Positions 37,568-40,749 of a DNA stretch of 64,000 bases are shown in pieces (position 1 is the stretch's first letter; the number at the start of each line of letters is the position of its first letter). Position numbers and translations under genes: made by a program. Source of the DNA: Hyaloraphidium curvatum SAG 235-1 (Eukaryota; Fungi; Monoblepharomycota); assembly GCA_025558095.1 (NCBI GenBank), contig JAIVFI010000012.1:682001-746000 (forward strand). Direction: 5' to 3'. The notes under the pieces are model-generated. The model saw only the letters and a program-made list of their open reading frames with translations, was not told the DNA's origin and did no database searches.

Positions 37568-38410
37568 ATGGCGCCACCTGACACCTCCCTCCGCGTCACC
37601 CTCCTCGGCACCGGCTCGCCCACCGCCTCCCTCGCGCGCTCCCATCCCGCTGCCCTCGTGGAATGGGGCCCGCGCGGATCCGGACACTGCGCGCTGGTGG
37701 ACTGCGGGGACGGCACGGTGCAGCAGCTGCTCAAGGCCGGGGTGAAGCTCAGCACTGTGACGATAATCGGGTTAACTCACATGCACTGGGACCACATTTT
37801 GGGGTACCCTGCATTCGTGTGGGGTAGCTGGCTCGCCGGCAGGCCCAAGCTGAGGACCTACGGCCCGACCGGCACCGAGGAGATGCACCAGCGTTTAGTC
37901 AGGTCGTACTACGCCGACCAGGCAGAATGGGGCATCGATCTCGGGTTCAGAAAGGAAGGGTGGGAGGACATCAAGGTGCTCGACGTGGAAGACGGGTGGA
38001 CGGCGGACCTGGACGGGGGCTGCACGGTCCGCGCGGGGAGGGTCGAGCACCCCCCCATGGCGTCGCTGGGGTACCGCTTCGAGCACGGCGGCAAGTCGAT
38101 CGTCATTTCTGGCGACGTCGCCCGCTGCGACGAGCTCGTGAGGCTTTCACGCGACGCCGACGTGCTCGTCGTCGACGCCTGCGCGGCGCCGCCGCCGGAC
38201 ACCGCGCCACCCCAGCGGCAGAAGCTGATCGAGAAGCTGCACGGGTTCCATGCCAGCCCGCAGGATTGCGTGGACATGGCGCGCGCGGCGGGGGTCAAGC
38301 ACGTGGTGCTGACGCACCACCTGCCCGAGGTGGGGGTGCCGAGCTTCGATGCGGAGGGGTACGAGGGGAAGGTGACCGTGGGCGAGGATTTGATGGTCGT
38401 CGAGGCGTGA
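37568..38410 (+). CDS. MBL-fold metallo-hydrolase (RNase Z/AtsA-like), intronless
   Basis: LLGTGSP, LVDCG, THMHWDH, SGD, H-ASP and LTHH motifs. Confidence 0.9.
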   Translation: MAPPDTSLRVTLLGTGSPTASLARSHPAALVEWGPRGSGHCALVDCGDGTVQQLLKAGVKLSTVTIIGLTHMHWDHILGYPAFVWGSWLAGRPKLRTYGPTGTEEMHQRLVRSYYADQAEWGIDLGFRKEGWEDIKVLDVEDGWTADLDGGCTVRAGRVEHPPMASLGYRFEHGGKSIVISGDVARCDELVRLSRDADVLVVDACAAPPPDTAPPQRQKLIEKLHGFHASPQDCVDMARAAGVKHVVLTHHLPEVGVPSFDAEGYEGKVTVGEDLMVVEA

Positions 38411-38736
38411 TGGAAAATAGGGTTTCCCCCGGTTACGGCTGGAAGACGTACGTGCCGGGAAGCACGCAGCTGTACGAGCTTTAGACGGCGCCGTGGACGA
38501 GGCCATCTGGAGGGGCAAGGAGCGTGAAGGGCATCGGGTCAGGGCTGATTGGGCTGGTTTCACTTCTGGCAATGTTCGTCCGTGACGACTGCAAATGCCC
38601 ACGATGTGGCACCGCGCCTACACGGCCCTGCCTGTCGTGTTGGGCTCCTGTGCGTGAGAAACCAACGACCGCTACCGCCGCCCGACCGTGGTTTGCCTTC
38701 ACGCAACGCCTGACAAAAGATGTCGGGCTGCAACCC

Positions 38737-40406
38737 TCACGCCCCCTTGCCCCCCTTTTCCTCGTCCGCGACGAACTGCAGGTCCACCTGGTCCGACGTC
38801 GCCGCCCGTTCCACCCTCTTCCCGATAATCCAGCACCCTTCAATCCACTCCAGGATGGTCAGGACACTGAAGCCCAGCAGGAGGCCCATCATGCCTCCAA
38901 CGGAACCGAAGTACGTGAGCCTGGCGCGGGAGGAGGTCAGATCGGACGCCGCGTTCCGTGGTCGGGTACCAACGGTGTGTATGCGTGCGTCTCATCAATG
39001 CGCGTGACCATCTGGTCGTTCAGGACCACGCTAAGGATGAAAGTCCCGTCGACTGCCGCAGTGCCATTGATCTGCGCGCCGTTCACCGTCGCGTTGAGCA
39101 TCGCCGCCGTGATGGGTTTGGTCGACGCAGTCTGGGGGAACTCGTACTCCTCGCACGAGGGGAGGGGGCACGCGGCCTTCGCCGCCTCGGGGCCGCAGGC
39201 CTGAAGGAGGGTGCAGTTACTGCCGCTGTATGGGGGCCGGCAAGGGTAGGGGTATTGGGTGAAGTTGCAAGTGCCGTTGAGGTTCTTGCTCGCGCATGAG
39301 CCGGGGAGTTGCTGCGTGCGCCGGGGTCAGCGGAAACGGGTTGCGGTGGGCCAAGGGGAACCTTACAGAGGGAAGATCAGCGCCGTTAGTGGTGTTGATT
39401 GTGGGGTAGCTGCAGGAGCAAGCCTGCTCTATGCAGGATTGCTGGAAGGTCGCAAAGCACCTGGACTGGCCACCGGGTCTGCTGTCGCAGTTGTTGATGA
39501 TCGTGGAACGGGAGATGGAGAATCTCACTCGGGTCGTGACTTGAATGGGAGGCAGTCAGATGCTGCTTGTGCCAACGAAGTGCCCAGAAAACCCACGTTC
39601 GAGGGTGAGGAGGTTGGCAAGCAGCGGCGAGTACTGCTCCTCGGGCTTGCGTATCGCGTAGGTTATCGAGTCGAAGGTCGCTAGGCCCGGGAGGCGGCCC
39701 ACGACAATCATAGAGTAGCCCGGCTGCGTCGCGGCGATGCTTCCGTTCGCAGGCGTCGTGAAGCAGAGCGTGGGGCTCGAGGCAAATGGGTAGTCGATGA
39801 AGCTAAGCTGGCCGTCGGAGCGGCAGCGTTCGCTGCCCGTGACGTAGTCCGAGTTGGCCAGCTGCCGCGGGGTCCGGTTGCCGTAGAAGCATAGGATGCC
39901 CGAGCTGTTGAATAGGTTGACCAGCTGTTCCTCGGGCGATATCCCCGAGACCACGTTGACGAAGGAGCGGACTGAGTCGGGGTCGAGGGTGGAGAGGCAC
40001 ACCGACACGGCGGGGAAGGGGGTGGGCGACACGAACTCCTGGGTGATGAGCGTGCTAGTCGGGTCCGAGACGAGGTACTGAGTCTGCAGCACGAAGTAGG
40101 TGATGAAGAGGGCCACCGCGGCGAGCCAGAGGAGGAGCCAGCACAGGCGGTTGGCGAGAGACCGCTTCCTGTCGAATATTCGCCCTAATTGTCGGCCGTG
40201 AGCGAATGACGCGCAGATTTCGGCATCTTGCGGTGCCCACAGACGCCGTGTGCCGTCGACACGGATGTCACGGCGTAGGTTTCCTCGACCAGGTCGACCT
40301 TCTCCGTCGCCGCCGGCTGCAGAACAGGGCGCTGCGAGACGCCGTTCGTAGCGCCCGCCGCCGCCGCGCCGACCGTCTCCATCTCGGCCGGCGCGCCGTT
40401 GGACAT
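38737..40406 (-). CDS. DEG/ENaC/ASIC (amiloride-sensitive sodium channel) family subunit, spliced
   Basis: STAHGV|WRIF; TM1 CWLLLWLAAVALFITYF; FPAVSVC; Cys-rich CIEQACSC...CPLPSCEEYEF; TM2 FGSVGGMMGLLLGFSVLTILEWIE; stop at 38739-38737. Confidence 0.88.
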
Positions 40407-40749
40407 GGCGGCGGGAGCGGGGCGCGACGTGTTTGGGTTCAGGGTCGCCGGGGATTGCGGTGGGAGGCGGCGGCGCCGCTCCAACCACCCCATTTCCGGG
40501 AAGCGCTTACCAGTGCCTCAGGGCACGGATCACGCGAGGGACGGCAAAATGGGACAATCATGATCATTCTTTGTAGTGTATGTTGCCGCGTGGCTGATCA
40601 GCGTCCCGTGGAGAACACAGGCAGGACATCGCGAGCCAAAAGCGCCTCGCTAGGTCACCTGCGCCTTTGACCGATGACCTGGAGGTGTGGGACGGTCCGA
40701 TTGTGGACTAGATTGGGCGGATCGCACGCGAGAAGGTCAGACGAGTGAA

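Follow-up and report, generated by a model that had tools for sequence, protein, structure and literature searches.

The minus strand of a 64,000-nt stretch of the Hyaloraphidium curvatum genome (assembly GCA_025558095.1; this whole stretch is referred to below as the window) very probably carries, at 40406..38737, an intact and transcribed gene for a 482-aa DEG/ENaC/ASIC subunit, a putative cation channel belonging to a small lineage-specific clade. NCBI places H. curvatum, a freshwater organism of an early-diverging lineage, in Fungi (chytridiomyceta, Monoblepharomycota), so the gene product, hereafter P0002, is a member of a well-known channel family from an unexpected kingdom. It has already been deposited, as the 482-aa hypothetical protein DFJ74DRAFT_666459, and it is undiscussed in the searchable literature, where, judged by title and abstract and including work on Hyaloraphidium and on chytrid and other zoosporic fungi, we found no fungal DEG/ENaC channel. 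Members of this family are trimers with a non-voltage-gated, amiloride-sensitive cation pore lined by the second transmembrane helix (TM2) and by a re-entrant loop with a His-Gly (HG) motif; a GxS motif together with acidic residues in the TM2b segment favours Na+, and the ectodomain transduces an external stimulus.

The gene was modelled by reading the minus strand in three frames from 40520 to 38600 and splicing the coding segments manually, which gave five coding exons separated by four GT-AG introns (56, 57, 55 and 53 nt). The deposited protein, which came up in a word search that used an intronless paralogue as query, is identical to the manual splice at 4 of 4 junctions, and it was used for all whole-protein analyses, the Pfam search being run exon by exon as well. 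The codons for W56, L252 and P422 are split by introns. The guanine-plus-cytosine (GC) content is 62–75% throughout the window and 64% at the gene. Positions of the gene features in the window, including the first transmembrane helix (TM1) and the 3′ untranslated region (UTR), are as follows.

Exon 1, 40241..40406, minus strand: ATG at 40406; residues 1–55 and the first base of W56; cytoplasmic N-terminus.
HG motif H53-G54, codons 40245–40250, minus strand: in exon 1, within STAHG (50–54).
Intron 1 (56 nt, GT..AG), 40185..40240, minus strand: seen in the sequence and as a transcript contig joint at 40184/40241.
Exon 2, 39597..40184, minus strand: residues 56–252 with split codons; TM1, FPAVSVC, and the palm, beta-ball and finger part of the ectodomain.
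TM1 (approximately residues 65–94, with W71), 40069–40158, minus strand: model helix 65–94.
FPAVSVC (residues 112–118), 39997–40017, minus strand: in the exon 2 reading frame.
Intron 2 (57 nt, GT..AG), 39540..39596, minus strand: seen in the sequence; the transcript contig skips 57 nt.
Exon 3, 39367..39539, minus strand: residues 252–309; start of the thumb with C269, C279, C287, C292 and C294.
Intron 3 (55 nt, GT..AG), 39312..39366, minus strand: seen in the sequence; the transcript contig skips 55 nt.
Exon 4, 38974..39311, minus strand: residues 310–422; remaining thumb (C315 to CPLPSC 357–362), knuckle, last long ectodomain beta strand before TM2, and IDETHAY (414–420).
Intron 4 (53 nt, GT..AG), 38921..38973, minus strand: seen in the sequence; the transcript contig skips 53 nt.
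Exon 5, coding part, 38737..38920, minus strand: residues 422–482 and the stop codon at 38737–38739; TM2, E446, E449 and a short cytoplasmic tail.
TM2, ∼38830–38920, minus strand: placed by the end of the Pfam ASC profile, the alignment to ASIC1 TM2 and the break in the model helix.
GxS filter G438-F439-S440, 38866–38874, minus strand: in exon 5; TM2 sequence GSVGGMMGLLLGFSVLTILE.
3′ UTR, at least 38400..38736, minus strand: the transcript contig covers 38400–38919 unbroken, with 213 more letters past 38400.

An initial reading of the window made from the letters alone (the sequence-only reading) had proposed a complete gene of this family at 38737–40406; the start at 40406 and the stop codon at 38737–38739 agree with these coordinates, and the order of its hallmarks holds on the minus strand: STAHG, W71, FPAVSVC, CPLPSC, IDETHAY and a TM2 with GxS. 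Its count of at least four exons was right in that the gene is split, the exact number being five coding exons with four introns. The TM2 exon, which it had described as missing from the list of open reading frames (ORFs), is absent at the default cut-off of 60 aa but appears at a cut-off of at least 25 aa as a 51-aa ORF (38737..38892). The splice junctions were further validated by the intronless paralogue P0001 (locus L001, near 266–268 kb of contig C12), a single unbroken ORF that runs through all four junction positions and there reads STAHGVWRVFDRK, ...NTRVRF..., ...AAQLPGSCA... and ...AYTVLSYLGAVGG... without interruption.

Two public runs were aligned to 38400–40700, one of which, X1, we took to be RNA by inference. 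This run contained one 1862-nt contig that was 100% identical to the gene region and skipped exactly 53, 55, 57 and 56 nt (CT..AC on the plus strand, GT..AG on the gene strand). Because the contig lacks precisely the four introns, we conclude that transcription and splicing follow the model; the sequence-only reading had named RNA as a check, and the check succeeded for the four introns but not for the 5′ end, which is taken up below. The contig continues for at least 213 nt past 38400 into the 3′ end of a convergent plus-strand gene (37568–38410, a 280-aa ORF), with an overlap at approximately 38187–38410. This extension represents either overlapping 3′ UTRs or a merge of two convergent transcripts during assembly.

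P0002 is a bona fide member of the DEG/ENaC (Pfam ASC) family as judged by profile, PDB sequence search, conserved residues and predicted fold. It matched Pfam ASC (PF00858) at 96.7 bits (E 2.1e-27; gathering cut-off 23.6) in two stretches, the better of which covers profile positions 296–454, while exon 2 alone scored 35.4 bits at profile positions 14–73 and exon 5 alone matched positions 430–454 of the 455 in the profile. A PDB sequence search with P0002 returned only DEG/ENaC chains (ASIC5, ASIC1, ASIC2, FaNaC and PPK26, with E from 1e-9 to 6e-4), and the nearest clusters in the ESM Atlas were PF00858 in 30 of 30 cases. We then considered individual residues in an alignment of 124 sequences, made up of the fungal clade described below and the 115 best full-length distant relatives. 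Every near-invariant column of this alignment is kept in P0002, namely G54, W71, F112, P113, G430, G431, G434, L435, G438, S440, E446 and ten cysteines (C118, C196, C269, C279, C292, C294, C315, C324, C357 and C362) out of the 16 in its ectodomain. G438 is the sole fully invariant column, and S440 and G54 are each conserved in at least 90% of the sequences. The HG motif aligns with that of ASIC1 and ASIC5, and FPAVSVC aligns with FPAVTFC of ASIC1. An ungapped HMMER alignment to chicken ASIC1 places G438-F439-S440 on G-A-S, E446 and E449 on the Glu and Asp of TM2b, and G427-S428 on the G-D that precedes TM2.

The structural predictions agree with this assignment. An AlphaFold2 model computed with a 5-sequence alignment was unusable, with a predicted local distance difference test score (pLDDT) of 42.6, and the prediction was repeated with the 124 sequences, which gave a monomer with pLDDT 85.3 and a predicted template-modelling score (pTM) of 0.79. 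The model has a TM1 helix (65–94), a mixed alpha/beta ectodomain (95–421, ∼327 aa) with a long beta hairpin (399–418), and a second helix (422–481) that is broken at 438–441, on the GxS motif. We take this break to correspond to the one between TM2a and TM2b in ASIC1 structures, and helices are present where the ASIC architecture, as we understand it, has its finger (124–178), thumb (275–356) and knuckle (378–396). Foldseek against the PDB found ASIC1a, ASIC5 and FaNaC at E 3e-20 (best 3.2e-20) to 4e-15 with a probability of 1.00, and VIA-align superposed 313 residues on human ASIC1a (Z 18.5, root-mean-square deviation 3.5 Å; model 65–448 against chain 40–452, from TM1 to TM2). The top 41 VIA-align entries were all DEG/ENaC, ENaC structures included, followed by PAC/TMEM206 at Z 13–14. 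These results predict an ASIC-type fold with two membrane helices, so that a failure to match the ASC profile or structure, which the sequence-only reading had given as grounds for dismissal, did not occur. That reading had also described a compact ectodomain with a reduced finger. The ectodomain is presumably only slightly shorter than that of ASIC1, and ASIC-sized rather than ENaC-sized, which bears out the compactness weakly; the finger helices are present in the model, with which a reduced finger agrees at best loosely.

Comparison with characterised channels shows both what P0002 shares with them and where it departs. With ASIC1a and ASIC5/BASIC (structures 9e4d, 2qts and 9mky) it has in common the Pfam family, the fold, the HG motif, FPAV(S/T)xC, the cysteines, the GxS belt with its TM2 break and the two acidic TM2b residues, at 14–19% identity. 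The PAC/TMEM206 proton-activated chloride channel has a similar two-helix trimeric channel fold but is smaller and lacks the thumb cysteines, GxS and HG, and P0002 matches only ASC in Pfam, with no sequence-profile tie to PAC. In ENaC, a C-terminal PPxY (PY) motif serves Nedd4-2 regulation; no PPxY occurs in the C-terminal tail of P0002 (453–482). Thr98 occupies the position of the post-TM1 His of chicken ASIC1 in the ungapped HMMER alignment, and P0002 thus lacks the ASIC proton-sensor residue. According to PMC10507113, this His (H73 in mammals) and K211 are present in all of the proton-sensitive ASICs that it included. With Thr at this position, ASIC-type proton gating is unlikely, and Thr98 together with the missing PY motif indicates that P0002 is orthologous to neither ASIC nor ENaC. 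Nor could it be placed among the ASIC-like sequences (animal clade A), since in our limited sampling its clade lies outside the ASIC-named tips as well.

The H. curvatum assembly comprises 31.9 Mb in 55 contigs, and the window corresponds to 682001–746000 of C12 (786 kb). Five ASC loci are present in this genome, two on C12 and three on C31 (573 kb).

P0001, C12 near 266 kb: intronless; deposited under the automatic name 'Amiloride-sensitive sodium channel-domain-containing protein'.
P0002, the gene studied here, C12 near 721 kb: four introns.
P0006, C31 near 81 kb (locus L002): family match stops after QLPG, with unrelated sequence beyond.
P0004, C31 near 93 kb (locus L003): one 66-nt intron inside TM2.
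P0009 (KAI9009182.1), C31:334060–335507: divergent subfamily without HG.

The paralogues are 35–54% identical and form two subfamilies with a common cysteine pattern and a Gly-Phe-Ser (GFS) filter; their intron counts are 0, 1 or 4, at differing positions. Several of the deposited models or motifs deserve comment. The 459-aa model of P0004 reads through the 66-nt GT..AG intron (L003:2641–2706, C31 near 94.3 kb) and ends in unrelated residues, whereas the spliced form reads ...GSVGGM followed across the junction by MSLLLGFSVLTVCEWIEG..., with an intact pore helix and a Ser where P0002 has G434. At the P0006 locus the family match ends at ...VEQLPG (L002 ∼2307, C31 near 81.8 kb), and no thumb or TM2 coding sequence occurs in the next 900 nt; P0006 is probably a truncated duplicate lying 12 kb from P0004, the C-terminal ∼230 aa of its deposited 609-aa model being unrelated. 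In P0009 and its metagenomic relative P0156, STAHG is replaced by SGAPP or SSAPP, so that HG is lost, and GFS is kept in TM2. The metagenomic relative P0008/P0155 has HD in place of HG.

An orthologue of the intronless P0001 was found outside H. curvatum. This protein, P0003, is 54% identical to P0001 and 52% to P0002, and its gene is likewise intronless, on a 21-kb Logan contig (L007; run SRR23967301, 56% GC). We compared this one contig with the H. curvatum genome, and L007:1–17574 corresponds to C12:251–275 kb: the downstream neighbour of P0003 matches C12:272841–274628 at 50–58% identity and an upstream neighbour matches C12:251072–252349 at 56%. Because both matched neighbours flank P0001, L007 represents a block of conserved synteny whose source organism is related yet clearly distinct, and the family is therefore older than the split between this organism and H. 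curvatum.

The distribution of the family outside animals is known to be sparse. Reviews call DEG/ENaC channels 'animal-specific' or place their origin at the root of the animals, allowing for rare exceptions among protists (PMC6986788, PMC9822975), and homologues are listed in choanoflagellates (PMC10770216). In PMC10507113, a BLAST survey of many eukaryotic groups, Fungi among them, returned candidates from holozoans, one alveolate and one stramenopile only; none came from the intervening lineages, and loss or lateral transfer was proposed. The non-metazoan members described in PMC10507113 (from Tunicaraptor unikontum, Cafeteria roenbergensis and Symbiodinium) and the choanoflagellate ones of PMC10770216 resemble the present case in having unicellular hosts and a patchy distribution and in being functionally uncharacterised, but their hosts are holozoan, heterokont or alveolate, whereas that of P0002 is a fungus.

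We searched 1.84 billion representative proteins exhaustively with a profile and obtained 519 matches at E ≤ 1e-3. Only 7 of these 519 clusters fell below 1e-30, after which there was a gap to 6e-17. The seven are P0006 and P0009 from Hyaloraphidium, P0003 from SRR23967301, and the metagenomic P0007, P0008, P0010 and P0011, with P0008 and P0010 representing two paralogues in JGI sample 3300059473; Hyaloraphidium is the sole named organism among them. Below the gap, the named proteins among those looked up came from a jellyfish, two molluscs, a leech and the ichthyosporean Chromosphaera perkinsii. No named relative outside the clade is closer than the Chromosphaera protein (EukProt EP01135_P003702, P0014; 647 aa, E 3e-15). 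It has a much larger ectodomain than P0002, shares ∼21% identity with it and sits on a very long branch. Ichthyosporea do not appear among the non-metazoan holders named in the available portions of PMC10507113.

Maximum-likelihood trees, from which no root was inferred, were computed under LG+G4 for 124 rows and under LG+C20 for 47 rows, without the published sequences of Tunicaraptor, Cafeteria, the choanoflagellates or Symbiodinium. The eight members of the fungal clade were monophyletic, with Shimodaira–Hasegawa-like approximate likelihood-ratio test (SH-aLRT) values of 99 (LG+G4) and 98 (LG+C20), and they joined Chromosphaera perkinsii with values of 98 and 95. The clade plus Chromosphaera was split from all 38 or 112 other sampled sequences (SH-aLRT 89–95); the few named tips among these are all animal and most tips are unnamed. 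The phylogeny proposed by the sequence-only reading thus yields a distinct fungal clade that groups with Chromosphaera outside the other sampled tips, subject to long branches and to the many unnamed tips. The tree argues against recent acquisition from an animal and does not discriminate massive loss after vertical descent from an old transfer among protists. Taken together, the distribution of the clade and the tree speak for a long-standing presence in opisthokont protists and fungi rather than for a recent capture from an animal.

How a fungus came to carry such a gene can be explained in several ways. Since the family is best known from animals, one could suppose that the gene derives from a contaminating animal or protist or from an assembly artefact, and the sequence-only reading had accepted an animal-derived contig as a ground for abandoning its claim. 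The contig proved to be fungal, with an even GC content of ∼64–66% along its 786 kb, and the genome contains four further loci. The DNA and transcript runs bear one organism label, the locus of a paralogue is syntenic in a relative, and identity to animal sequences is only ∼20%. The short introns (53–57 nt), put forward earlier as host-type and as an argument against contamination, are confirmed by the spliced transcript contig. With five loci on contigs of 786 and 573 kb, spliced host-type introns and synteny of a paralogue, contamination is excluded, and we regard this explanation or an assembly error as having practically no chance of being correct. A pseudogene reading was considered and rejected as well. 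A more serious alternative is that the gene entered the Hyaloraphidium lineage long ago by horizontal transfer, with a unicellular holozoan or some other protist as the donor, and was not passed down vertically from the opisthokont ancestor. The extreme patchiness of the clade (7 clusters among 1.84 billion representatives, with Hyaloraphidium as the only named holder) is what such an event would produce, the nearest named relative is an ichthyosporean, and PMC10507113 reports none from Fungi and invokes lateral transfer for other non-metazoan members. Against it, the data show long residence: five diverged paralogues in two subfamilies (35–54% identity) have 0, 1 or 4 introns and host GC, and one of them has a syntenic orthologue in a relative, where the adjacent genes reach no more than 50–58% identity. 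Moreover, patchy loss is common in fungi and explains the distribution equally well, and the tree gives no direction of transfer. We consider ancient transfer rather unlikely. The other possibility, which we put forward tentatively and at somewhat less than even chances, is that the last common ancestor of animals and fungi already had DEG/ENaC channels and that, within Fungi, these were kept only by the Hyaloraphidium lineage and its uncultured relatives, where a five-gene family, some members of which lack HG, would let a planktonic, wall-bearing cell sense ionic, osmotic, mechanical or chemical cues from its environment.

If P0002 works as its relatives do, its subunits would assemble as plasma-membrane trimers, alone or with the four paralogues, around a cation pore that is not gated by voltage and probably prefers Na+. 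TM2 and the HG re-entrant loop would line this pore, and the GxS motif and E446/E449 would contribute to selectivity. The Cys-rich ectodomain would sense an extracellular stimulus by which the pore is opened or modulated. A leak that is constitutive or modulated by ions, osmotic conditions or mechanical force is as plausible as gating by a ligand. As the dominant mode, a leak that is constitutive or modulated by ions, pH or Ca2+ is a reasonable possibility, mechanical or osmotic gating is somewhat improbable, a small-molecule or peptide ligand is less probable again, and a protein that does not conduct at all is improbable. In this last case the fold would have been kept in a surface receptor, an adhesion-like protein or a silent modulatory subunit. 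The unusual Phe in the filter, the loss of HG in the P0009/P0156 subfamily and the truncation of one copy (P0006) could be understood in this way, but P0002 itself keeps HG, the TM1 Trp, the Gly and Ser of GxS, the TM2 glycines and both acidic TM2b residues. In addition, GFS is present in every clade member with a complete TM2, which implies purifying selection on the pore and counts against a non-conducting protein. We consider loss of conduction a distinctly poor explanation of P0002 and prefer a conducting channel subunit.

Several points nevertheless weigh against the interpretation of P0002 as an intact cation channel subunit of old standing in this lineage. Channel activity, selectivity and trimer formation are predicted from homology. 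The middle residue of the filter is a bulky Phe (GFS), where ASIC1 has Ala (GAS) and Ala or Ser is found in ASIC1 and ENaC, Asp433 of chicken ASIC1 is a Ser in P0002, and the proton-sensor His is Thr98, so that the properties of P0002 may differ from those of characterised members. At the 5′ end, an in-frame ATG at 40493, which lies 87 nt before the annotated start, would lengthen the protein by 29 residues (MGWLERRRRLPPQSPATLNPNTSRPAPAA), and because the transcript contig stops at 40269, the 5′ end and the start codon lie outside the RNA support. The RNA nature of run X1 is itself presumed, its intron-less contig being best explained as cDNA. As for the tree, Chromosphaera and the fungal clade are two long branches (2.81 and 1.18 changes per column), whose pairing could be an attraction artefact, and the preponderance of unnamed tips is a substantial caveat.

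An expressed, multi-copy fungal clade with conserved synteny partly closes the gap that separates animals from the distant protists in which DEG/ENaC genes have been reported. The family may be older than the divergence of animals and fungi: either its minimum age moves towards the opisthokont ancestor, or an old transfer between kingdoms is documented. The genes are compact (482 aa for P0002) and in part intronless, which allows them to be expressed directly to test what stimulus a pre-animal DEG/ENaC channel responded to. If ancestral retention in fungi is correct, Hyaloraphidium would offer a non-animal, non-neuronal system in which to probe the ancestral gating stimulus of the family.

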